Virus record (IMG/VR): IMGVR_UViG_3300035145_003993
Coordinates: 147,365 to 211,364 of that record
Direction: 5' to 3' (one strand)
DNA: 64,000 nucleotides
Under the pieces are notes generated by a model. That model worked only from the letters and a program-made list of their open reading frames with translations. It had not been told where the DNA came from and searched no databases. Numbering within the stretch: position 1 is the stretch's first letter; each line of letters begins with the position of its first letter. The position numbers and the translations under genes were made by a program. Of this stretch, positions 19,792 through 43,015 are shown piece by piece.

Positions 19792-20001
19792 ATGTACCAA
19801 ATTTTAGAAAATTATATACAACTTGTATTTGAAAACGAAAAAAATAAAAACAAAACGTTTAAAGATATACTTAATAGTTTAAAAAATAGTCAAAATCCTA
19901 AAAAGGTACTAAGAAATACAGATCCTATAGAAAGAAATACAGATCAAATAGGATTTGACCAATTAATTAAAAAATCTAGTAATTCTAATCAAACGCGTTA
20001 A
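19792..20001 (+). pseudogene. short plus-strand ORF (69 aa), probable gene remnant with leader motif
   Basis: AAGGA RBS, MYQILENYIQLVFE leader, internal 14-bp direct repeat aagaaatacagatc (19911 and 19932), 3' end overlaps the dnaE-C stop. Confidence 0.4.
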
Positions 20002-23000
20002 TCTTTTTAAGCTTAGCTAAACTTGATGACATACCCCAGTTAACATCATTACTAATATCAGCCAACCAAGTTGTAAATTCAATTTCACCTTCCATATCTC
20101 CCCATACTCGAAGCCATCCACTTCGATTATCAATATCGACGCATTTCCATCTCATAAATGATTTACCGTTTTTAGTTGTTTTTCTAATAACTTCTGTAAC
20201 AGTAAACCATCCAATTCCACGCTCACCTTTTGGTATATCAAAAATACTATTGATTTGCTTCTGTTTTAGTTTTTTAACTAAGCTTGGTGGAAACAATAAA
20301 TCGTCATTTGCATCATTACTGAGTTCAAAATAGTTTTTAATTTTAGTACTTCTTGACCAATCACTAACAACTCTGTATTGTGAGATTAACTTTTCGACAA
20401 TTGGAATGATTTCTTCACCATTTTTATTTGCTTTTTTAATAGCAGTTTTTGTCATTCCAAAGCTTCCTTTCTTTAAAATCATATAATTATCCAAGATTAA
20501 ATCATGCATTTGTTTGTGATTGTCTAGTGTTCCATCTTGAAATTCTTGGAGTGACTTAAATGCTTCCATCTTTGTTAGTGATGAAAAAGCTGTTTTATTC
20601 ATTTTTGAATGTTTCCATTCTCCTTCTTTATTGTAAAAAAGATCTTGTAAATTATTATATGGTCTATTTACAAATATTTCTTCAACAGCTTTGTCACCTA
20701 CTCCTTTAAGAGATGTCAACGGAGGAACAAACGATTTTAAATCTTCTGAATATTCCCATTGAGATCCTGAGTGATTTATATCAATTGCTGATATGTCATA
20801 TCCTAGTGCCTTAATTTCTGCAATTACTTTGGACATTCCTTTAGGATTACCATTTTCTGATTGTAAAACAGTTGCTAGCCAGTCTGTTTCGTAGTGTGTA
20901 TGAAGCCACGCAGCGTAATATGAGTCGATTGCATAAGAAACAGCATGACTTTTATTGAAACCGTAAACAGCAAAACCTTCTATTTCTTCCCAAAGTTTTT
21001 TAGATATATGTTCGGGTACATCATTAATTTCTTTTGCACCTTTAATAAACTTTTCTCTTGCAATTGTTTTTTCATCTTTTTTATTTCCCATTGTTGCGAG
21101 ATTATTCTTAACAAGGGTTTTTCTCAGCTTATCAGCTTCACCTGGATCAAAACCTGATAGTTTTTGTGCAAGTAACATAAATTGCTCTTGAAATACAACG
21201 TAAGAAAATGTTGGTCCTAAAACTTCTTCGATAATCGGATGATCGTATTTAATTTGTTCTGCGTTTTGTTTAGATTTAACATATTTTTTATGAACATTAG
21301 CTTTAAGAGGTCCAGGACGATAAATAGCAGTTAAAGCTGCTAATTCTTCAATACTTTCTGGTTTAGCTTCTAATGAAAAGTTTCTAGCTCCTGTATTTGT
21401 AAATTGGAATATTCCTACAAATCTTCCATCATGATATACATGCTTCCAGACATCTTGATCATTTTGTTCGTGAAATCTACAATTTAAATGTTTATCAAAG
21501 AATTTTTTAGCATCACTAAATTGTGGATTATTATTACCCTCCTTTTTAAGGATTCTATAAATACAATTTTCAATATCTTTTAATAAGGATAAACCTAAGA
21601 AATCAAATTTAATAAAACCATTATCTTCTAAGTTTCTAAAATTTAATCCTTCTGACCATGGTGTTTGTAATTCTCCTCTTACACCTACGATAGGCATAGT
21701 TGTTTCTAAATGTTCAGGATCAGCTACTAACACACCCCCTGCATGACGACCAATTGCTCTATTCTGCATAAACAAAGAAGCAATATGAGTTTCAACTTCA
21801 GGATATCTTTCCATAAAATCTTTATATTCTGGAGAATACTTTTTACAATCTTCATGCTTAAGAACAAAAACAGATTTTTCTTGATCGTCACCTTTTGCCA
21901 TTTTCATAACTTGATCGTGAAGAGGACCAGTTACTTTATTTACTTCATCATACGGAATATCATAAAACTTAGATATATCTTTAATAAGAGACTTAAGCTT
22001 TAAAGTATTAAAGTTAGAAACAGGAATAACAGCATCGTTTCCATATAATTCTTTTGCAGCATTAATTAACTCATCACGATCACCAGCATCTGTATCAATA
22101 TCAGGCCATGAAACCCTATGCCTTCCTAAGAATCTTGCCCAAAGAAGATCGTATGGAAGAGGGTCAACTTGTGTAATGCCTAATAAATAATTAACTAAAG
22201 AGCCAGCTCCTGATCCTCTTCCTGGCCCTAATAAAGTTTTCTTTTCAGCCTTCTTAAAAATTTCATACATCGTAATAAAATATGCTTCGTGACCAAGATA
22301 CTTTATATCTGATAATTCTTCTTTAGCACGATCAACATAAACTTGGTTTGTATGAAAACCATGGCTAACGAGTGAATCTTTAACTAAAGAAGATAAGTGT
22401 TGAAAAGGAGTTTTATTTGGAACGTTTATTGTAGGTAGTTTAACTCCTGTATCAATCCAAGTATCTTCAAATTCATTCCAAACGATATCATGAGTTCGAT
22501 TAATAGCATCACGAACTAATTCTTCATTACCTTTATAAAATTCATAAGTAGGATATGAATCAAGAAATTCTTCCCACATTTGAGAAGCATTTTTTGGATA
22601 TAATTCACACTTAAGATCTTCAAATTCTGGAAGAGAAAGATTATCTCTTTTTCCTAACCAACCAAGTTTTTTATATAATTCTCGAGCTTGCCATTTTTCA
22701 TTTGAAGGGTAATGTGAATCTGCTGTACAAATAAGAGGAATACCTGTTAATTTATGGTGTTCTATAAGATAATCATTAACAGTATGCTGTTTTTCTAATT
22801 TATTAAACTGTAATTCAAGTTTAAAATTGTTTTCTCCAACACAAGAAACAAACCTATCTGTTAGATTTAATAATTCTTTCTGAATTTGTTCACGTGATTG
22901 ATTATGAACTTCACCTCTTAAAATACGATTACTATAAATACCACCAAGGCAGTTGTGCACTAAAATATTGTTAGCAAAAAAATTGTGATTACCTTCAACA

Positions 23001-23080
23001 GTAATGTCGTAAACGTCAGAAGTCTCATCTATTTCTTCAATAATTTCAACTTCAATAAATTTTGTTTGAATGTCTTTCAA
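19985..23080 (-). CDS. dnaE: DNA polymerase III alpha, C-terminal part (IntC 43 aa + 988 aa C-extein)
   Basis: TTG start with AGGA RBS; LVHN|CLGG junction; ADSHY, GRGSGAGSL, PDIDTD, GRHAGG, KFDFLGL, FNKSHA motifs; C-terminal OB-like region. Confidence 0.96.
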   Translation of the reverse strand: MKDIQTKFIEVEIIEEIDETSDVYDITVEGNHNFFANNILVHNCLGGIYSNRILRGEVHNQSREQIQKELLNLTDRFVSCVGENNFKLELQFNKLEKQHTVNDYLIEHHKLTGIPLICTADSHYPSNEKWQARELYKKLGWLGKRDNLSLPEFEDLKCELYPKNASQMWEEFLDSYPTYEFYKGNEELVRDAINRTHDIVWNEFEDTWIDTGVKLPTINVPNKTPFQHLSSLVKDSLVSHGFHTNQVYVDRAKEELSDIKYLGHEAYFITMYEIFKKAEKKTLLGPGRGSGAGSLVNYLLGITQVDPLPYDLLWARFLGRHRVSWPDIDTDAGDRDELINAAKELYGNDAVIPVSNFNTLKLKSLIKDISKFYDIPYDEVNKVTGPLHDQVMKMAKGDDQEKSVFVLKHEDCKKYSPEYKDFMERYPEVETHIASLFMQNRAIGRHAGGVLVADPEHLETTMPIVGVRGELQTPWSEGLNFRNLEDNGFIKFDFLGLSLLKDIENCIYRILKKEGNNNPQFSDAKKFFDKHLNCRFHEQNDQDVWKHVYHDGRFVGIFQFTNTGARNFSLEAKPESIEELAALTAIYRPGPLKANVHKKYVKSKQNAEQIKYDHPIIEEVLGPTFSYVVFQEQFMLLAQKLSGFDPGEADKLRKTLVKNNLATMGNKKDEKTIAREKFIKGAKEINDVPEHISKKLWEEIEGFAVYGFNKSHAVSYAIDSYYAAWLHTHYETDWLATVLQSENGNPKGMSKVIAEIKALGYDISAIDINHSGSQWEYSEDLKSFVPPLTSLKGVGDKAVEEIFVNRPYNNLQDLFYNKEGEWKHSKMNKTAFSSLTKMEAFKSLQEFQDGTLDNHKQMHDLILDNYMILKKGSFGMTKTAIKKANKNGEEIIPIVEKLISQYRVVSDWSRSTKIKNYFELSNDANDDLLFPPSLVKKLKQKQINSIFDIPKGERGIGWFTVTEVIRKTTKNGKSFMRWKCVDIDNRSGWLRVWGDMEGEIEFTTWLADISNDVNWGMSSSLAKLKKINAFD
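22952..23080 (-). mobile_element. Split intein C-fragment (DnaE), 43 aa
   Basis: Blocks F/G: VYDITVEGNHNFFANNILVHN, followed by Cys+1 at 22949-22951. Confidence 0.95.
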
Positions 23081-23099
23081 AATTATTCCTTTTTATTAG

Positions 23100-23128
23100 A
23101 ATATAATACAATTAGTTAATATTTACAC
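23100..23128 (-). promoter_or_regulatory. Promoter GTGTAA-N17-TATATT upstream of dnaE-C
   Basis: -35 box lies in the last codons of the endonuclease gene; -10 box is 19 nt before the TTG start. Confidence 0.6.
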
Positions 23129-24062
23129 TTTCATTAATTAAATCAATTGTATTATCAATTTCATTTTCCCATATAATCAAGTAGTTATAGTTTCTTTTTT
23201 TTGCTATCTTCATTTTGTAAGAATCAGCATTCCAAATATCACCTGCTTTTATTTTTCCTCTTGGGAAATCAAGAATGCTATTTTCATTATATAGAGAAGG
23301 GTGTGCGTGCCAAAATAGACCATGGCATTCAATGATTAAATTAAACTTTGGCAGATAAAAATCATATATGTAACATCTTTTGTTGTATAATAATTCATCT
23401 TTTGTCAAATTAATTCGATATTGAATAGAATAGTCAATGTTATTTTCTCTTAATAATCTTTCAATTCTTTTTTCTGTTTTAGGTTGTGATGTTTTTTTAA
23501 GAGCACCAATTGCACCTTTAACAGCTCTTTCTGAAATTATTGCATTTGCATTATCCTTACTTAATCCTTTCTTAAGCCAAAACTCAATGCAAAATGGAGA
23601 ATTTGATCGTTTATAGTTAGATAAACTTTCTTTTGCATCTTCAATATTTTCCGTTTTTTCTATCCAATACTCTAAAGTTTGTTTTTGGTTGTAAGGTTTA
23701 CCTGACTTTTTTCTAGTTTTAACTGTTCCTTTTTGTCCTTTTAAAGAAGTCTTCAAATAGTAACTTTCAATTTCTTTTATTGAAGTGTTTTTTGGAAATT
23801 TAAACTGACTTCTGAATGCTGTTGAAGTTTTTTGATTATCTACATGAAGCTTAAAACCGATTTTGTCTTTTAAAAGAATAGAAAAAGTTTGCTGTGATAT
23901 ATTTAACTCATTAAAGCATTTTCTATTGTCACGATTAATCATTTGATATAACATTGAAAACGAGTAAAGTTTATTAATAAAACCTTGTATTTCTTCTTTT
24001 GAGTAATAAGAAAAAAGTATTTCTTCTCTAATTTTCCATATATTTGTTTTTTTTGTTTTCAT
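23112..24062 (-). CDS. free-standing homing endonuclease, Vsr-like/DUF559 (EDxHD-type), inside the fractured dnaE
   Basis: SQPKTE...YIYDFYL...IIECHGLFWH...ADSYK...LIIWENE; position between IntN and IntC; AGGAGG RBS. Confidence 0.85.
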   Translation of the reverse strand: MKTKKTNIWKIREEILFSYYSKEEIQGFINKLYSFSMLYQMINRDNRKCFNELNISQQTFSILLKDKIGFKLHVDNQKTSTAFRSQFKFPKNTSIKEIESYYLKTSLKGQKGTVKTRKKSGKPYNQKQTLEYWIEKTENIEDAKESLSNYKRSNSPFCIEFWLKKGLSKDNANAIISERAVKGAIGALKKTSQPKTEKRIERLLRENNIDYSIQYRINLTKDELLYNKRCYIYDFYLPKFNLIIECHGLFWHAHPSLYNENSILDFPRGKIKAGDIWNADSYKMKIAKKRNYNYLIIWENEIDNTIDLINESVNIN

Positions 24063-24099
24063 TATATTATCCTCCTAGGCACATATTATATATTCTGCT

Positions 24100-25017
24100 T
24101 CAGAGGTTAATATTAATAATTATATCACCTTTAACAATATCTTTTGTATCAATCCATCCTTTGTCTTTAACAAGAACACGATGATCAGGTGTAAGTTTGA
24201 TTTCGTTACCTTCTTTGTCTTTAATTCTCATAAGCTTAGCACCTCCTCGGGTTTTGTCACCCCAGATTACTTTTTTAAATTCAGCTTTGCTAGTATATTC
24301 ATTATAAGAAAGAACTTGGATTTCTTCACCTTTATTAAATCTTTCTACAACTTCTTTAATAGATAGATTTCCAGATGAAGTTTGTAAAGTTGTGTCAGGA
24401 TGAAGACAAGCTGTAGATATGTGTAATCCTTCACCATGTTCTTGAAGCATTTGAAAATCAATACGTGGGTATCTATAAAAACCATATTTATACGATTTTT
24501 TAACTAAAGTAAATAAATTGTGAAGACCTTTTTGGTTTTTTGCTGTAACTACCAAATGATATCTTCTTTTCCACTCATCTTTAAGGATATCAACATTTTT
24601 TGTTTCATCTTCGTCTTCAACAACTAATCCGCCACTTTCATCATCTGCGTCAATATCAACTTTTTCTTTTGATTTCCTTTCAGCAGCAGCGGCAGATTTT
24701 GCGTCTTTTACTGCTTGTTTGTGAGCAGCATATTCTTCAGACCATTGTTGAAGTGAAGGAACAAAATAAAATTCAACTCCATAAATTTGTCTATAATTCC
24801 TTCCTGATTTTTGCATTCTAATTGTATGAGATCTTGCATGAGCAAGACCATTACCGTTACCATGGTCTGTTAGTGCCCATGCATCCATACCCTGAGATTC
24901 AGACAAAACAAAATCAATATGATCAGATGGGTATCCTAATCCATCGAATGTTGAAAACGTGCTGTGTGCATGAAGACCGACAAATCTATCTGGTGGTGTT
25001 ATTAAATCAATAGACAA
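24100..25017 (-). CDS. dnaE: DNA polymerase III alpha, N-terminal PHP part (203 aa N-extein + IntN 102 aa)
   Basis: LHAHSTFSTFDG, ALTDHGN, YGVEFY, HLVVTAKNQKG, YRYPRID PHP motifs; ISTA|CLHPDT junction; TTG start. Confidence 0.96.
   Translation of the reverse strand: MSIDLITPPDRFVGLHAHSTFSTFDGLGYPSDHIDFVLSESQGMDAWALTDHGNGNGLAHARSHTIRMQKSGRNYRQIYGVEFYFVPSLQQWSEEYAAHKQAVKDAKSAAAAERKSKEKVDIDADDESGGLVVEDEDETKNVDILKDEWKRRYHLVVTAKNQKGLHNLFTLVKKSYKYGFYRYPRIDFQMLQEHGEGLHISTACLHPDTTLQTSSGNLSIKEVVERFNKGEEIQVLSYNEYTSKAEFKKVIWGDKTRGGAKLMRIKDKEGNEIKLTPDHRVLVKDKGWIDTKDIVKGDIIININL
24103..24408 (-). mobile_element. Split intein N-fragment (DnaE), 102 aa
   Basis: Cys1 block A CLHPDT, block B TPDH, then a stop codon. 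Confidence 0.95.
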
Positions 25018-25394: not shown

Positions 25395-25493
25395 ATGAAA
25401 ACTAAAGAAATATTAAGAGAATGGAATTTATTTTTAAAAAATATATTGAGACTCTTATTTCTTAAATATTGTATTATACTAATCGTTCAATAA
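25395..25493 (+). pseudogene. 32-codon plus-strand stub with leader-like start
   Basis: AAGG RBS, MKTKEILREWNLFLKN...; resembles the start of ORF 36142-36564 (MKNIYEMFNQWRQFLLDE). Confidence 0.3.
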
Positions 25494-26657
25494 TTTTAAA
25501 GTTCTTTCTTGATTAAATCTCATAACTTTTCCATATTGTAATTTAAAACTTTCAACACAGTTTACAATATTATTTGGACTTTGAGCATCTTCACAGTGTG
25601 TATTAAAAAAATCAATTAAAGTTTCTAATGATTTTAAACCTCCACCAAGATTCCAATAACATTCTCCTGCGAACCACATTCTAGATCTATTAGGCATCCA
25701 CCTATTTTTAATACACTGTTTTATTTCTTTGTTAAGGTAATCATTTTTTGTATTTCCATTCATAATATCTTTTTTTGATAAAACGGGAGTAAAAGTATTA
25801 TTTAATAAATTGTTATAAGACTTTTCATCTAAAAGTTTTTTTGAAATACTATCTACACTATCTAAAAAACTTATTTCTTTAATTCTACATTTTCTAATAC
25901 AAATTTCTCTAAATGCTAATTGTCTAAGAATAGGTATAATTGGATTATCCTTTTCAATAAACCTTGGAGAAAGTGATAAAACTAAATGTGTTATTACCCT
26001 TGGATCAATTAAACCATGATGTAAAAATTTAGAAAGTTTTGTACTTCCTTCTCTTTCATTTCTTGTTTTATGATAAGATAAAACCTTTTCTTTGAATCTT
26101 TTTAAAATGTTACAAACATTTTTATGAGTTTTCAAAGATAAATTATGATTAATTTTATATAATTCGCCTATACTCCCAAAATCATTTATTTTATTATAAT
26201 TACAAAATATTTCTTCTTTCTTTAGTCTATTTTTTGTCCAATAGATCCATCTACTTTTTGCTGTCATTTTTGTACAAGACTCAATATAAGAGTCAGAATC
26301 GACTTCTTCTACATTAATATTATTAAATTTTAATTTTTCTGAAAAAAGAGGTTTATCGTAATATACTTTTTCGATATTTTCATTTTTACAAAAATCTTCA
26401 ATTAATGCAACAGGATTTTTTGATTTAATTATTTTAAGATTTAAATCATAATTTTCTTTTAATCTGCTTGAAAAATAATTTAATGATTCGTAATAAAATA
26501 GATTATTATTATTTTTATAATAATTTTTATTATTATCATTTAAATAATAATTTGAAATATATACAACACAAATATTTTTATAAGAAGATATAGCTTTTTT
26601 AAAAATAAAACTGTTTGTTCTAAAAGAATGATCAATTATAATTAGACATTTAGACAT
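25479..26657 (-). CDS. phrB: DNA photolyase/cryptochrome family protein (compact, divergent)
   Basis: YHKTRN...STKLSKFLHHGLI, RQLAFRE, GNT, WMPNRSRMWFA, EDAQSPNN FAD-binding motifs. Confidence 0.8.
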   Translation of the reverse strand: MSKCLIIIDHSFRTNSFIFKKAISSYKNICVVYISNYYLNDNNKNYYKNNNNLFYYESLNYFSSRLKENYDLNLKIIKSKNPVALIEDFCKNENIEKVYYDKPLFSEKLKFNNINVEEVDSDSYIESCTKMTAKSRWIYWTKNRLKKEEIFCNYNKINDFGSIGELYKINHNLSLKTHKNVCNILKRFKEKVLSYHKTRNEREGSTKLSKFLHHGLIDPRVITHLVLSLSPRFIEKDNPIIPILRQLAFREICIRKCRIKEISFLDSVDSISKKLLDEKSYNNLLNNTFTPVLSKKDIMNGNTKNDYLNKEIKQCIKNRWMPNRSRMWFAGECYWNLGGGLKSLETLIDFFNTHCEDAQSPNNIVNCVESFKLQYGKVMRFNQERTLKLLND

Positions 26658-37595: not shown

Positions 37596-38201
37596 TTATT
37601 CTAAATCAAAACTTACAGAAACTTTTCCTTTTAATCGTGGTATTCTTAATTGCTGGACTATATTGTGTTCTTTTGCCTCTTCAGCTTCTAAAAACCAATC
37701 TGCGTGACCTTTGTCATGAATTAAGTTTAAGAAATAATCATCCGGCTTTCCACAATTTCGTGCCATCATAGTATATAATTTTTTATTTAATCGTTCAGAC
37801 TCGCGTGCATCAGCTTTAAGTTCTTCAACTTTACCAAAAGCCATTGAAGAAACATCATGAATCATTAGTACAGAATCTTTGTCCATAAATCGTAAACCTT
37901 CGTCACCAAAAGAAGCTAATAAAGCTCCACATGACATTGCTTTTCCTTTAACAATAGTTGCTACAGGAATTGTTGATGATTTAATTGTAGCTATCATTGA
38001 TAATAGTGAATAAGCTTGACCTCCAAATGAATCAATAACAATAGGTATAATTTTTTGCCCAGTATTTTGAGCAGCACTAACGAGAGTTGAAAATTCGCTA
38101 GCAGACTCTTCAGTAAATTCATTTACAGTTATAACTACAGGATCGTTTCTTAGCTCAAGATCCTTGATTAGTGGAGATATCTCAGCAACAAAATTAATCA
38201 T
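37596..38201 (-). CDS. clpP: ClpP-like serine protease
   Basis: IDSFGG, GKAMSCG (catalytic Ser), LMIHD (His), WF..AEEA.E. Confidence 0.9.
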   Translation of the reverse strand: MINFVAEISPLIKDLELRNDPVVITVNEFTEESASEFSTLVSAAQNTGQKIIPIVIDSFGGQAYSLLSMIATIKSSTIPVATIVKGKAMSCGALLASFGDEGLRFMDKDSVLMIHDVSSMAFGKVEELKADARESERLNKKLYTMMARNCGKPDDYFLNLIHDKGHADWFLEAEEAKEHNIVQQLRIPRLKGKVSVSFDLE

Positions 38202-38445
38202 TTAACATTCCTCTCAAAGAATCAATTGTCATTAATCCAACTTTTCTTGACACTTCTTTGTCATCAACTACCTTAATAAATGTAGGAACATTCATAACAT
38301 GATATTTACATGACTTAACAGTATCTTCAGATATATCAATAATCTCAATTGATAATTCGTTTTTAATATTTTCTGTTAGTCTATTTTTCATTTGCTTACA
38401 CGGCCCACACCAAGGAGCACTAAAAAATAAAATTTTTGTATTCAT
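38194..38445 (-). CDS. trxA: thioredoxin
   Basis: FSAPWCGPCK, cis-Pro VPT. Confidence 0.93.
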   Translation of the reverse strand: MNTKILFFSAPWCGPCKQMKNRLTENIKNELSIEIIDISEDTVKSCKYHVMNVPTFIKVVDDKEVSRKVGLMTIDSLRGMLND

Positions 38446-38502: not shown

Positions 38503-39468
38503 TTAAGCTATATTTTCCCAACCCCAACTGTCACCACTCATACCATCAGCATTATAGTCTGTAACAGTTCCTTCGAAGAAGTTTTTAAAACTGTCACCAT
38601 TAATAATCCAGTCTAACCAATCTAGCGGATTATGTTTGACTTTAAAATTAGGCTTTAAACCTAACTGAATTAAGCGACGGTCTGCAAGATATCTGATGTA
38701 TTGCTTAACCTCTTCTTTGTCTAATCCTTCAATATGACCCATTTCATAAGCTAAATCAATAACTTTGTCTTCTAATTTTACAGCTTGACGATACATTTTA
38801 TAAATTGATTTTTTAAATTCGTCATTTACAATTCGTGGATGTTCTTTTACAAACTCTCTAAATAGATGAGTCATGCCTTGAACGTGCATCGTCTCGTCGC
38901 GGATAGACCATTCAACGATTTCACACATTCCTTTCATTTTTCCAAACCTTTGGTAATTTAATAACATTACAAATGCTGAAAATAGACTCATTCCTTCATT
39001 ACACGCAGACTGCGCAAGAGCTAGTCCTAGTCCTTTTTTAGTACTTACATCGTTTTGTTGCATGAACTCAATTTTATCACTCATTTCTTTATATTCAAGA
39101 AACGCGCCATATTCTTCTTCAGACAATCCTAGTGTATCGTTCAAGAGAGCATAGCTTCTTTGATGTGTGCCTTCACGATTTGCAAAACTTAATAGCATAC
39201 TCCTAATTTCATTATTTTTAAACTTAGGAATAAACAGATCACAATAATTACCACCTACTTGCACATCACTTTGTGTAAATAGTCTAAGAATTTGTGTAAT
39301 ATGGTTTTTTTCTTCTAAAGATATTTTTCCACCTTTCCACTGATTGACATCTTCAGCTAACTTTGCTTCCCAACTTCCCCAGTGAATCTTTTCATGACTT
39401 TCTGCGATTTCCATTGCCCAAGCATACTTGAAGGGCTTATATGTTGTATTGTATTTTAGTAATGACAT
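38503..39468 (-). CDS. nrdB: ribonucleotide reductase class Ia beta subunit
   Basis: LFTQSD, REGTHQRSY (radical Tyr), EGMSL, RDETMH di-iron ligands, NFFE. Confidence 0.95.
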   Translation of the reverse strand: MSLLKYNTTYKPFKYAWAMEIAESHEKIHWGSWEAKLAEDVNQWKGGKISLEEKNHITQILRLFTQSDVQVGGNYCDLFIPKFKNNEIRSMLLSFANREGTHQRSYALLNDTLGLSEEEYGAFLEYKEMSDKIEFMQQNDVSTKKGLGLALAQSACNEGMSLFSAFVMLLNYQRFGKMKGMCEIVEWSIRDETMHVQGMTHLFREFVKEHPRIVNDEFKKSIYKMYRQAVKLEDKVIDLAYEMGHIEGLDKEEVKQYIRYLADRRLIQLGLKPNFKVKHNPLDWLDWIINGDSFKNFFEGTVTDYNADGMSGDSWGWENIA

Positions 39469-39501
39469 ACGTTTAACCTTTGTAAAAACCTTGTATAATA
39501 A

Positions 39502-40563
39502 TTATCCTTGACAGCTTAAACATTCATCAGGATCAGCGAAATCTTGTAACTTATCTTGCTTAACCTTCTGACTAACCTTTTCAGCTGAAGCTCCTGCGTT
39601 TGTCCTTAGATAATATAATCCTTTTAACTTCTTTTTCCAAGCTCTAATATGTACTGCATTAACATAAGATTTATCAGTACCAGCGGGAAAGAATAAATTA
39701 ACACTTTGACCTTGGCAAATAAATTCTTGTCTATCACCTGCGTGATCTATAATCCATCTTTGATCTAATTCAAATGCTGTTTTAAATACTTCTTTATGCC
39801 AATCTGACATGTATTCAAGGTGTTGAACAGATCCTTCTGCTAAGATAATAGATTTCCATTGTTCATTCATCCAAGATTCAATATCAATTTTTTCTACATT
39901 GTCAGCATACTCTCTTAAAACTTTTTCTAAGTGATGATTTTTCACTAAATAAGAACCTACTCTTGTTCTATGTGTATATGCATTACTTTTCCAAGGTTCA
40001 ATAGATGGTGAAGTCCCTGCAATAATAGAAGAATTAGCATTTGGAGCAATTGCTAATAGATGAGAATTCCTAACTCCGTAACCAGATCCATCAGGACATT
40101 CACCTTTTTTAATCGCCAACTCTTTTGTACGCTGTTTTGCTTTTTCTTTAATTAATGAGAATATATTAATATTTGTTGCTTTTGCAATCCCTGATTCAAA
40201 CGGAATATTTTTTGATTGAAGATAGGAGTGAAATCCCATTGCACCTAAACCAAGTGATCTTTCTCTCATAGCGGAAAATTTTGCTTTGTGCAAATAGTCA
40301 GGAGCATTTTCAATAAAAAATTGTAGGACGTTATCTAAATACTCTATTAAATCTTCAACAATATTTGTGTCTTTCCATTCATCAAACTTTTCAACATTTA
40401 GTGAGCTTAAACAACATACTGCACTTCTTTCAGGAGATGTTGCCAAATGGATCTCATTACAATTGTGAACGAGCATGTTATTTGCAAAAAAATTTTTATT
40501 GTCTTTAACAGTTATGTCAAAAACAGGTTCTTTTGTTTCTCTTTTAATTATTTTTAATCCCAT
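39502..40563 (-). CDS. nrdA: ribonucleotide reductase alpha, C-terminal part (IntC 34 aa + 319 aa)
   Basis: LVHN|CNEI junction, CCLSSLN, RSLGLGAMG, AIAPNANSS, QGQSVN, LYYLR, C-terminal CLSC. Confidence 0.96.
   Translation of the reverse strand: MGLKIIKRETKEPVFDITVKDNKNFFANNMLVHNCNEIHLATSPERSAVCCLSSLNVEKFDEWKDTNIVEDLIEYLDNVLQFFIENAPDYLHKAKFSAMRERSLGLGAMGFHSYLQSKNIPFESGIAKATNINIFSLIKEKAKQRTKELAIKKGECPDGSGYGVRNSHLLAIAPNANSSIIAGTSPSIEPWKSNAYTHRTRVGSYLVKNHHLEKVLREYADNVEKIDIESWMNEQWKSIILAEGSVQHLEYMSDWHKEVFKTAFELDQRWIIDHAGDRQEFICQGQSVNLFFPAGTDKSYVNAVHIRAWKKKLKGLYYLRTNAGASAEKVSQKVKQDKLQDFADPDECLSCQG
40462..40563 (-). mobile_element. Split intein C-fragment (NrdA), 34 aa
   Basis: VFDITVKDNKNFFANNMLVHN, followed by Cys+1 at 40459-40461. 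Confidence 0.95.
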
Positions 40564-41302
40564 ATTTTCTACCTTTTATCCATTCTTCACTGTTAAGTGC
40601 ATCGATTTCTTTTTTGCTCATTTGTTTTGAAACTTTAAGTTTTTCGTTAGTGTACCAATTTTTTCCTGATAATGACTTAGAAAGTTTATTATTATGGCTA
40701 TTCGTTCTTTTATATTTAAAATCACTGTCATTTAAGTTATACAAATCTTTCATTGCGTTTACAAAACCTTTTAAGCCCGATCCATATTTTTTAAATCTAA
40801 ATTTTGAATAAGACTTTGGAAAACCATAAACTTCTGAACTATATATTTGCCACTTTCTTTTAGGTAGCTGTCCTTCTTTTTGAAAATAAGTAAAAGCTGA
40901 TTTTAATATTTCTTCATCAGTAAAACCTGTGTATGTTGGATTTTTTTCTCCTGATGTTGCAATAGAATTTTTTAGTCGCCATTCACTATATTTTTCATCA
41001 GGAACTATCCATCCACCATCACCACCCGTAGTCATATTATAACCCTTTTTAAAAGTATCATAATATTCAATGTAATACTTTTCTTTTTCTAAAGCTTCTT
41101 TTTTAGTATAACATTCAAAAATTATTTTAGATACTATATTTTTAGGACCGTATTTTCTAATTGCTTTATAAAAATGTGTATCATGACCTGATTGTGCATT
41201 TGTAATATGTTTGTGTAGTCTTTTTGACAAAGTTAGTCCAGTGTATCCAATGTATGACTTGTTTGTTTGTTTAAAAGTGTGCATGTATATTATATATTTC
41301 AA
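40544..41302 (-). CDS. free-standing GIY-YIG homing endonuclease inside the fractured nrdA
   Basis: YIIY...SYIGYT, RLHKH, FYKAIRKYG, E..YI...GYNMT.GG; TTG start with AAGGAG RBS; 20-nt overlap with the nrdA-C start. Confidence 0.9.
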   Translation of the reverse strand: MKYIIYMHTFKQTNKSYIGYTGLTLSKRLHKHITNAQSGHDTHFYKAIRKYGPKNIVSKIIFECYTKKEALEKEKYYIEYYDTFKKGYNMTTGGDGGWIVPDEKYSEWRLKNSIATSGEKNPTYTGFTDEEILKSAFTYFQKEGQLPKRKWQIYSSEVYGFPKSYSKFRFKKYGSGLKGFVNAMKDLYNLNDSDFKYKRTNSHNNKLSKSLSGKNWYTNEKLKVSKQMSKKEIDALNSEEWIKGRKYGIKNN

Positions 41303-41360
41303 ACTATCTCCTTATGTTAGTAAATGAATTTCAACATTAAATATACATCTAACAATCAAA

Positions 41361-42527
41361 TTAAGAAAAAACTAATTCATCGTCTTCTTTAAGATCTTTA
41401 GCTTTTACATATCCTCTATTTACAGTATATACTTTGTGATCAGGAGTACAAACAATTTTTTTACCAGTTTCTTCATCTATTATTTCAAGTACTTCTGCAC
41501 TTTTACTAATTAATCCTGCATCAGTAATTTCTTTGTATTCAATTTCTTTTGTATCAATATTATAAGACAACACAAAAATTTCTTTTCCTTCATGAAAAAG
41601 ATCAACAACTTCTTCTAATGATACCTGTGCATTTGGCACATTGTCAATTAACACATCAATCTTCGTATCTCCTGTTAAGCAAAGATTTGATCCATGTATC
41701 TTAAGTCCTAAATCTTTTTGATATTGAGGTAAGTGTTTATTTGCTTCTGAAATGAAGTTAATATATGGCTCGCCTGTTCTAAATCTGACTTTTAGTATTC
41801 TTTGCCATAATTCTCTTGCGTCAACTGTGTCTCTTATTGTTTTATCATTAGGATCAATTAAATTCCATTTTTCGCCTTTAGATACTGCTTCCATAAATTC
41901 GTCTGTTACATTTACTGCATTGTTTAAATTAAAACATTTACGATTTACGTCTCCTCCTGTTGGAAGTCGAATACTTAAAAATTCAATAATATCAGGATGA
42001 GAAACATCCATATAAGCTGCATAGCTTCCTTTCCTAGTTTTTCCTTGTCTATAAGCAGTCATATCACTATCTGCAGATTTTAAAAAAGGAATTGGTCCTG
42101 GTGATATTGAAGAATTAGATCTAACTTTAGACCAATGACCTCCTACACCACCACCTTTTACAGACATCCAACGTAATTCATTTGAATGATCTATAAGACC
42201 TTCTAAAGAGTCATCAACATAACTTAAAAAACAAGAAATAGGAAGTCCTAATTCTGTACCACCGGGAACGGGAGCATTAGATAAGATTGGAGAACTAAAC
42301 ATAAACCAACCTTTTGCCGCGTAATTATAAATTCTTTGTGCAAGTGACAAATCATATTTTTTATTTTGAAAATCGTAAGAGAATGCTACAGCTGCCCTTG
42401 CAAAACTTTCTTGAGGAGACTCCTCGTGATCTTGCATATAATAGTCTCTAAGTAATTTTCGTGAAAAATTTGTTAATTTATCGTCATAATCTAAGTTAAT
42501 ACTAATACCATAGCATTCTTTTTTCAT
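41361..42527 (-). CDS. nrdA: ribonucleotide reductase alpha, N-terminal part (282 aa + IntN 106 aa)
   Basis: FSSPILSN, PISCFL, GGGVG, QGKTRKGS, TGEPYI, HGSNL|CLTGDT junction. Confidence 0.96.
   Translation of the reverse strand: MKKECYGISINLDYDDKLTNFSRKLLRDYYMQDHEESPQESFARAAVAFSYDFQNKKYDLSLAQRIYNYAAKGWFMFSSPILSNAPVPGGTELGLPISCFLSYVDDSLEGLIDHSNELRWMSVKGGGVGGHWSKVRSNSSISPGPIPFLKSADSDMTAYRQGKTRKGSYAAYMDVSHPDIIEFLSIRLPTGGDVNRKCFNLNNAVNVTDEFMEAVSKGEKWNLIDPNDKTIRDTVDARELWQRILKVRFRTGEPYINFISEANKHLPQYQKDLGLKIHGSNLCLTGDTKIDVLIDNVPNAQVSLEEVVDLFHEGKEIFVLSYNIDTKEIEYKEITDAGLISKSAEVLEIIDEETGKKIVCTPDHKVYTVNRGYVKAKDLKEDDELVFS
41364..41681 (-). mobile_element. Split intein N-fragment (NrdA), 106 aa
   Basis: Cys1 CLTGDT, block B CTPDH, RGYV.A.DL...D.L, then a stop codon. 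Confidence 0.95.
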
Positions 42528-42541
42528 ATTTTATTCCTTAT

Positions 42542-43015
42542 TCAATCTGAACTTCCGATTTTACCTTTTTTTCTTGTAGAAAGTTTGGATAGATTTAAGT
42601 ATTCTTCTTCGCCAATTTCAGAATATTCGTTGTCACACTTAACTACAATAATTTGAACAGGAAGTTTTTCGCCATGTTTTATATTATACTCTTCGTTACT
42701 AACGTTTACAAGATTTACAAATATTTCACCAGTATAACCTTCATCAATTACTCCAGCACGATATTTCAAAGGAGTTTTTGTAATTGATCCTCTTTCTTTA
42801 ATTAAAGTTACATATCCAGGAGGAGTAAAAACGTGTAAACCTGTTGAGACCATTGATCCTTTTTTATTATTTAAGGAAGGCATTATTGATACATCATCAC
42901 CTGAATTGTACAGATCTAGTCCCGCACTTTCACCGTTATATGCTGGAACATAATTACTTATATTATTAGATTTTAAAACTTTCTTTAATTCTTCTTTACA
43001 ATAAATCTTAATCAT
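42542..43015 (-). CDS. dut: trimeric dUTPase
   Basis: SAGLDL, ERGS, GVIDEGYTGEI, VQ, RKKGKIGSS (motifs 1-5). Confidence 0.92.
   Translation of the reverse strand: MIKIYCKEELKKVLKSNNISNYVPAYNGESAGLDLYNSGDDVSIMPSLNNKKGSMVSTGLHVFTPPGYVTLIKERGSITKTPLKYRAGVIDEGYTGEIFVNLVNVSNEEYNIKHGEKLPVQIIVVKCDNEYSEIGEEEYLNLSKLSTRKKGKIGSSD

Follow-up and report, generated by a model that had tools for sequence, protein, structure and literature searches.

What becomes of a ribonucleotide reductase (RNR) whose gene is broken immediately before the codon of its catalytic cysteine, and does such a break regulate the enzyme or merely serve the element that causes it? The question is raised by nrdA, the gene for the alpha subunit of a class I RNR, in the IMG/VR virus record IMGVR_UViG_3300035145_003993. 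The window, by which we mean the whole stretch of DNA that was analysed (64,000 nucleotides), comprises bases 147365-211364 of this 211,364-bp record, whose CheckV completeness is about 84%. Here nrdA lies on the minus strand in two pieces, each of which carries one half of a split intein (IntN and IntC, the N-terminal and C-terminal halves), with a homing endonuclease gene between them. We consider it very likely that this is a fractured class I nrdA with a 1220-bp mobile unit, that its two products are trans-spliced to an alpha subunit of 601 aa, that the unit spreads by endonuclease homing, and that it is selfish rather than regulatory.

Structure of the fractured nrdA and its junction

Three consecutive minus-strand open reading frames (ORFs), 41361..42527, 40544..41302 and 39502..40563, fill the interval. 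The first (388 aa) contains the Pfam domains Ribonuc_red_lgN and Ribonuc_red_lgC (profile positions 2-212) and a terminal Intein_splicing match, while the last (353 aa) starts with the final 31 positions of the Intein_splicing profile (125-155) and continues with the remainder of Ribonuc_red_lgC. Two same-strand ORFs with Intein_splicing at the C-terminus of the first and the N-terminus of the second make up the layout of a fractured gene. The nrdA N-extein comprises residues 1-282 (41682..42527) and ends in ...KIHGSNL. It is followed by an IntN of 106 aa plus stop codon (41361..41681; Intein_splicing 36.4 bits), which begins with Cys1 (CLTGDT) and contains the block B motif TPDH. In the second fragment, an IntC of 34 aa (40462..40563) ends in ...NFFANNMLVHN and precedes the C-extein of 319 aa plus stop codon (39502..40461), which starts with Cys+1 (CNEI) and has a CLSC tail.

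To set the junction, we used as a product model a natural uninterrupted homologue of 601 aa (P0021) obtained by protein search. Its first 282 residues share 100% (BLASTP) or 99.6% (tblastn) identity with the N fragment, the latter being also the protein identity between the N-extein and the homologue encoded by contig L006. The N fragment follows this homologue up to ...KIHGSNL and the C fragment resumes at CNEIHL, which places the junction at HGSNL/CNEI, and the two exteins (282 aa and 319 aa) add up to 601 aa, the length of the homologue. The Tara Oceans contig L006, which encodes P0021, aligns with the window at 42866..41683 and again from 40461 on. Compared at the DNA level with this empty allele, the window has 1220 bp more (40462..41681), inserted exactly between the codons of Leu282 and Cys, and these make up the element. 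The empty allele reads ...TCAAATCTA up to the insertion site and TGTAATGAA... after it, so that this matched allele defines the homing site to the base.

An alignment with Escherichia coli NrdA (L001, from NC_000913) was also made. In it Cys+1 falls on the thiyl-radical cysteine, E. coli C439, and N437, E441, C225, C462, Y730/Y731 and the C-terminal Cys pair are conserved, by which the catalytic, redox-pair and radical-transfer residues of a class I RNR alpha subunit are all present in the exteins. The initial annotation of this DNA had stated that splicing of GSNL to CNEI would rebuild the N-x-C-x-E active-site loop (N437/C439/E441) in a 601-aa alpha subunit, and that the splice nucleophile is the thiyl-radical cysteine. 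The alignments with P0021 and E. coli NrdA agree on the loop and the cysteine, the length of P0021 agrees with that of the product, and the fractured nrdA is confirmed in every detail. In separate searches of the exteins, the best PDB matches were the short alpha chains 6dqw and 6dqx, with E 1e-64 and E 1e-62 for the C-extein. The alpha subunit is itself of the short type, with 601 aa and without an ATP cone.

An allele of the NrdA-2 split intein

Fractured nrdA with an intein at the thiyl-radical cysteine was already published in 2009. Dassa et al. (2009, PMC2677866) described 26 fractured loci from GOS metagenomes, seven of them NrdA (NrdA-1 to -7). In these the intein immediately precedes the thiyl-radical cysteine, a position that they named as the most frequent one for inteins in RNRs, and the NrdJ intein site follows one residue later. 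The same study reported that the endonuclease gene overlaps the downstream fragment, that an RNA hairpin covers the start of the endonuclease in 15 of 16 loci, and that the IntN of NrdA-2 is acidic and its IntC basic. Pinto et al. (2020, PMC7090010) printed the NrdA-2 sequence, with the junction residues SNL/CNE, and reported cis-splicing in E. coli of roughly 75-98% (about 87%) in mCherry, as well as trans-splicing in vitro, which was best at 21-30 degrees C in a buffer with 2 mM dithiothreitol (DTT).

We counted the differences between the window and NrdA-2 by eye on the printed sequence, in which one letter lost in optical character recognition was restored from the DNA printed beside it. 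IntN is identical at 92 of 106 positions (14 differences, about 87%) and IntC at 31 of 34 (3 differences, about 91%), with the same SNL/CNE junction. Exact motifs of the window intein had no match in the supplement of Pinto et al. (2020), and NrdA-2 differs at those positions. By this comparison the window intein is an allele of the NrdA-2 intein and not the same sequence, in line with the earlier suggestion that the fragments are very close to the NrdA-2 of Dassa et al. As a finding it is ordinary, being another allele of a split intein and of an arrangement published in 2009. What is new is the placement of an NrdA-2-type intein in the near-complete genome of a large uncultured marine phage, together with the second fractured gene of that phage, dnaE with a Vsr-like endonuclease, and the opposite charge polarity of its two split inteins.

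The window locus is like the NrdA-1 to -7 loci, and NrdA-2 in particular, in host gene, SNL/CNE insertion point, layout and the endonuclease gene between the halves. It also shares with NrdA-2 the lengths of IntN (106 aa) and IntC (34 aa) and their acidic and basic character. Unlike NrdA-2, which was seen in short read assemblies, the window copy stands within a phage record of 211 kb, where it has another fractured gene beside it.

Three other systems are instructive for comparison. NrdJ-1 (PDB 8ubs/9omb) has a related intein fold and is likewise a naturally split intein of a fractured phage RNR gene, but its insertion point follows the catalytic Cys, one residue further towards the C-terminus, with Ser+1, and its host is a class II RNR. 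In phage Aeh1 (nrdA-a/mobE/nrdA-b), a free-standing homing endonuclease gene likewise interrupts a phage nrdA within the active-site barrel; it overlaps the downstream fragment and is regulated by a hairpin. However, the Aeh1 endonuclease is of the HNH type, there is no intein, the fragments are joined non-covalently through charged tails, and the split falls after the catalytic cysteine loop, whereas that of the window falls immediately before the catalytic cysteine. The cyanobacterial DnaE split intein (Npu/Ssp) resembles the window intein in natural trans-splicing (predicted for the window), in Cys1 and Cys+1, and in the pairing of an acidic IntN with a basic IntC; the cyanobacterial dnaE halves are far apart without an endonuclease between them, whereas the nrdA halves of the window are adjacent and flank the endonuclease gene.

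The endonuclease gene and its predicted upstream hairpin

The gene between both intein halves (40544..41302, minus strand) encodes a free-standing GIY-YIG homing endonuclease of 252 aa with a TTG start codon. The Pfam domain GIY-YIG (PF01541; 35.7 bits) covers residues 2-89 with the motif ...YIIYMH...SYIGYTG, and the protein matches PHROG 314, "homing endonuclease" (E 1e-25). Its 3' end overlaps the start of the C fragment by 20 nt. Six related viral contigs carry this endonuclease at the same position with 80-88% identity.

A Shine-Dalgarno sequence, AAGGAG (41308-41313), lies five bases upstream of the TTG (41300-41302), and both are enclosed in a predicted RNA hairpin at 41283..41348 on the minus strand (minimum free energy -14.1 kcal/mol). 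Close loci retain the sequence of the stem; L013, a divergent allele, has another hairpin, which spans its Shine-Dalgarno sequence and ATG start. We suggest that the hairpin, by covering the ribosome-binding site, would probably limit translation of the endonuclease. Visual inspection of the spacer of 58 nt that precedes the endonuclease gene revealed no late promoter of the T4 type (TATAAATA).

Distribution of the element and its probable mobility

The best 120 matches of the protein search comprise split N fragments, in about 30 clusters, and uninterrupted NrdA proteins with lengths of 594-611 aa, of which there are about 90. The occupied contigs (L012, L015-L018 and L020) share the layout dUTPase, nrdA-N, GIY-YIG, nrdA-C and nrdB, followed by thioredoxin where the stretch reaches that far. 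In these relatives IntN shares 90-98% identity with that of the window and the exteins no more than 78-84%, yet the element is missing from L006, which has the closest extein overall (99.6%). Because of this discordance, the distribution points to horizontal movement and would fit a mobile element homing between diverged nrdA alleles. Together with the empty allele it is indirect evidence for a process in which the endonuclease would cleave the intein-less allele and the unit would be copied in, and we infer that the endonuclease of the window spreads the unit (IntN, the free-standing GIY-YIG gene and IntC) into empty nrdA alleles in this way.

Identity between the window and the empty allele is 97.6% upstream of the insertion site and 89.4% downstream (38593-40461 against L006:1186-3057). 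The first 300 nt downstream are at 89-92%, the most diverged stretch near the site, after which identity rises to 98-99%, apart from a single block of 100 nt further on, at the 3' end of the C-extein, where it drops to 78%. This asymmetry is compatible with a co-conversion tract or with a recombination breakpoint at the element, neither of which one pair of sequences can prove.

Besides, a second allelic family occupies the same nrdA site (L013 and L014), in which IntN is 51% and the endonuclease 58% identical to those of the window. An exhaustive HMMER search with IntN returned 1425 representative proteins, and positions were examined for the best 150. It turned out that IntN stands at the extreme C-terminus, as in a split intein, in 97 of these 150 matches and that 47 have the SNL/C junction, while a few, such as P0223, are contiguous inteins at the same nrdA site.

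Predicted splicing competence and dependence on both fragments

The canonical residues of a class 1 intein are all present, namely Cys1, T79-P-D-H82 in IntN, the block F Asp, H33-N34 in IntC, and Cys+1, and IntN matches the solved structure of the NrdJ-1 split intein (8ubs, E 1e-16). We predicted the complex of N-fragment residues 278-388 with C-fragment residues 1-40, together with three controls. The IntN-IntC pair received an ipSAE of 0.72, compared with 0.00 for the best of the three controls, a mark that 51 of 78 solved complexes attain, as do 2 of 108 mismatched pairs. Contact agreement between runs was at least 94%, and partner pLDDT at least 75. The prediction shows likeness to a working split intein, not activity. 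The net charge is -12 for IntN and +2 for IntC.

On these grounds we propose the following course. The two halves of nrdA would be translated separately, and the acidic IntN would associate with the basic IntC. Class 1 trans-splicing would then proceed through the Cys1 acyl shift, transesterification by Cys+1, cyclisation of Asn34 and the S-to-N shift, by which ...GSNL would be joined to CNEI... in the 601-aa alpha subunit and the former Cys+1 would become the thiyl-radical cysteine. We take splicing to be constitutive.

A search of the 211-kb record found no second RNR large subunit (PF02867) and no NrdD (PF13597), within its completeness of about 84%. Since PF02867 was found only at the fractured nrdA and NrdD not at all, the phage's own RNR depends on both fragments. 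It had been claimed that deoxynucleoside triphosphate (dNTP) supply depends on trans-splicing. This holds for the phage-encoded RNR only, as the host has its own RNR and the record is about 84% complete.

Several points weigh against the account given so far. The predicted binding of IntN to IntC may reflect the model's memory of solved split inteins. That this copy splices is something we infer from its relative NrdA-2, which is about 87-91% identical and was assayed in a foreign extein. Stronger constraint, instead of transfer, might likewise explain why the intein is better conserved than the exteins. The hairpin is not significantly more stable than shuffled sequences (z -1.18) and shows no compensatory changes among close loci. 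Constitutive, unregulated splicing is an assumption.

Alternative explanations

The initial annotation also proposed that splicing might act as a redox checkpoint, with a thioredoxin nearby. In this explanation, oxidation of Cys1 and/or Cys+1, for example to a Cys1-Cys+1 disulfide, would block trans-splicing, and the phage thioredoxin would relieve the block, so that dNTP synthesis would be gated by redox state. Both residues are indeed cysteines, located in the predicted interface between IntN and IntC (chain 1 residues 282-286, chain 2 residues 24-35), but such a pair is generic among class 1 inteins. Precedents exist in the Cys1-Cys+1 disulfide block of Pab PolII and the Cys-3/Cys1 trap of Pab MoaA (PMC3922620, PMC10663303). 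With these and with the internal disulfide of Mma PolII, the window intein has Cys1 and Cys+1 in common and a disulfide would be possible in principle; those three, however, are cis-splicing archaeal inteins, and the N-extein of the window ends in ...K-I-H-G-S-N-L without a Cys at -3, so a CxxC trap of the MoaA type does not apply.

The thioredoxin gene lends no support to the checkpoint either. It stands in the same place, next to nrdB, in the intein-free relatives L010 (a 107-kb contig) and L011, and is not tied to the intein; its presence is explained by the RNR itself, which needs a reductant via the C-terminal CLSC tail. The 2 mM DTT in the NrdA-2 trans-splicing assays in vitro might be read as a sign of redox sensitivity, but it belonged to the common buffer for all inteins of that study and was no specific requirement of NrdA-2. 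The bacterial cytoplasm is reducing, and the closest relatives lack the element, which argues against an adaptive role. We therefore regard redox gating of splicing as unlikely, and the checkpoint is not upheld. Its fully specified form seems to us more doubtful still: a disulfide between Cys1 and Cys+1 would reversibly stop NrdA trans-splicing until the phage thioredoxin released it, and the phage would thereby couple its production of dNTPs to redox conditions in the infected cell.

A second explanation dispenses with splicing. The intein halves would then act only as tags for dimerisation, keeping the NrdA fragments in a non-covalent complex like the one that the Aeh1 tails maintain. In Aeh1, the RNR made of NrdA-a and NrdA-b has full activity although no splicing takes place (PMC3045599), and the predicted binding of IntN to IntC is also consistent with such a role. 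In the window, however, an unspliced complex would leave an intein fold of about 140 aa in the N-x-C-x-E loop beside the radical cysteine. The catalytic splicing residues are all conserved, here and in the related loci, and the close relative NrdA-2 splices efficiently; because of this conservation and this activity, non-covalent assembly is very improbable.

Finally, the record being a metagenomic assembly, one might suppose that nrdA is decaying or non-functional, inactivated by the insertion in a phage that relies on the host RNR, but this has next to no likelihood, since both nrdA ORFs are intact, the identical architecture recurs in many independent contigs, and extein substitutions are overwhelmingly synonymous. 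Synonymous and non-synonymous codon differences stand at 21:1 for the N-extein and at 63:12 for the C-extein, and by this measure the nrdA exteins are under purifying selection.

Source record and neighbouring genes

The GC content of the window is about 25-32%. In the GenBank phage collection, relatives of the intein are all below 60% identity, and DnaB reaches 38% at most (best match Microcystis phage Mel-JY01), with no cultured relative there. The host of the nrdA element is an uncultured, AT-rich marine phage lineage with a genome of at least 211 kb. Its gene order in replication and nucleotide metabolism is shared by related contigs from the Delaware coast, Tara Oceans and JGI samples, which are 107-240 kb long.

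According to Pfam, the downstream neighbours of the fractured nrdA are nrdB, thioredoxin and ClpP, and the upstream ones dUTPase and a DnaB-like helicase. The RNR small subunit gene nrdB (38503..39468, minus strand) matches Ribonuc_red_sm (E 9e-68) and PDB 9dws (E 1.5e-127). By eye, NrdB keeps a Tyr at the radical position (motif EGTHQRSY), and its first metal ligand is Asp. The thioredoxin gene (38194..38445, minus strand; Pfam Thioredoxin) encodes the WCGPC motif and is the likely RNR reductant.

A scan for sigma-70 promoters found 48, compared with 39 +/- 6 in shuffled sequences, which is no enrichment, and we did not use it. One terminator-like site within the nrdA N-extein, shown by the same scan, was likewise not used.

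A second fractured gene, dnaE

A genome-wide intein scan revealed only one other split intein, in dnaE, which is also within the window. The whole fractured locus occupies 19985-25017 on the minus strand. Its N fragment (24100..25017, 305 aa) consists of a PHP domain and an IntN of 102 aa, and its C fragment (19985..23080, 1031 aa) of an IntC of 43 aa followed by DNA_pol3_alpha, with the junction ...HISTA/CLGG. Between them lies an ORF of 316 aa (23112..24062, minus strand) that matches Vsr weakly (E 0.008) as well as endonuclease families of PHROG. Similar DnaE loci with Vsr-like endonucleases were described by Dassa et al. (2009, PMC2677866). Next to dnaE there is also an ORF of 392 aa (25479-26657, minus strand), which has no Pfam match at E 0.01.

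The nrdA and dnaE inteins share 34% identity in IntN and 47% in IntC, and their block G is near-identical (NFFANNM/ILVHN). The net charge of the dnaE intein (element 22952-24405) is +2 for IntN and -8 for IntC, a polarity opposite to that of nrdA (-12/+2). Judged from the charges, such opposite polarity could favour correct pairing and keep the two inteins orthogonal, a reading that we find more modest and more likely than the disulfide gating of NrdA splicing described above. Two natural split inteins of opposite polarity in one genome may interest those who engineer orthogonal split inteins.

In the related 117-kb phage contig L013, a recA/uvsX-like gene (L013:726-3035) also looks broken, as a 245-aa ORF with RecA_N is followed by a 448-aa ORF that combines a Vsr/DUF559-like domain with RecA_N. 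This may be another endonuclease-fractured gene.

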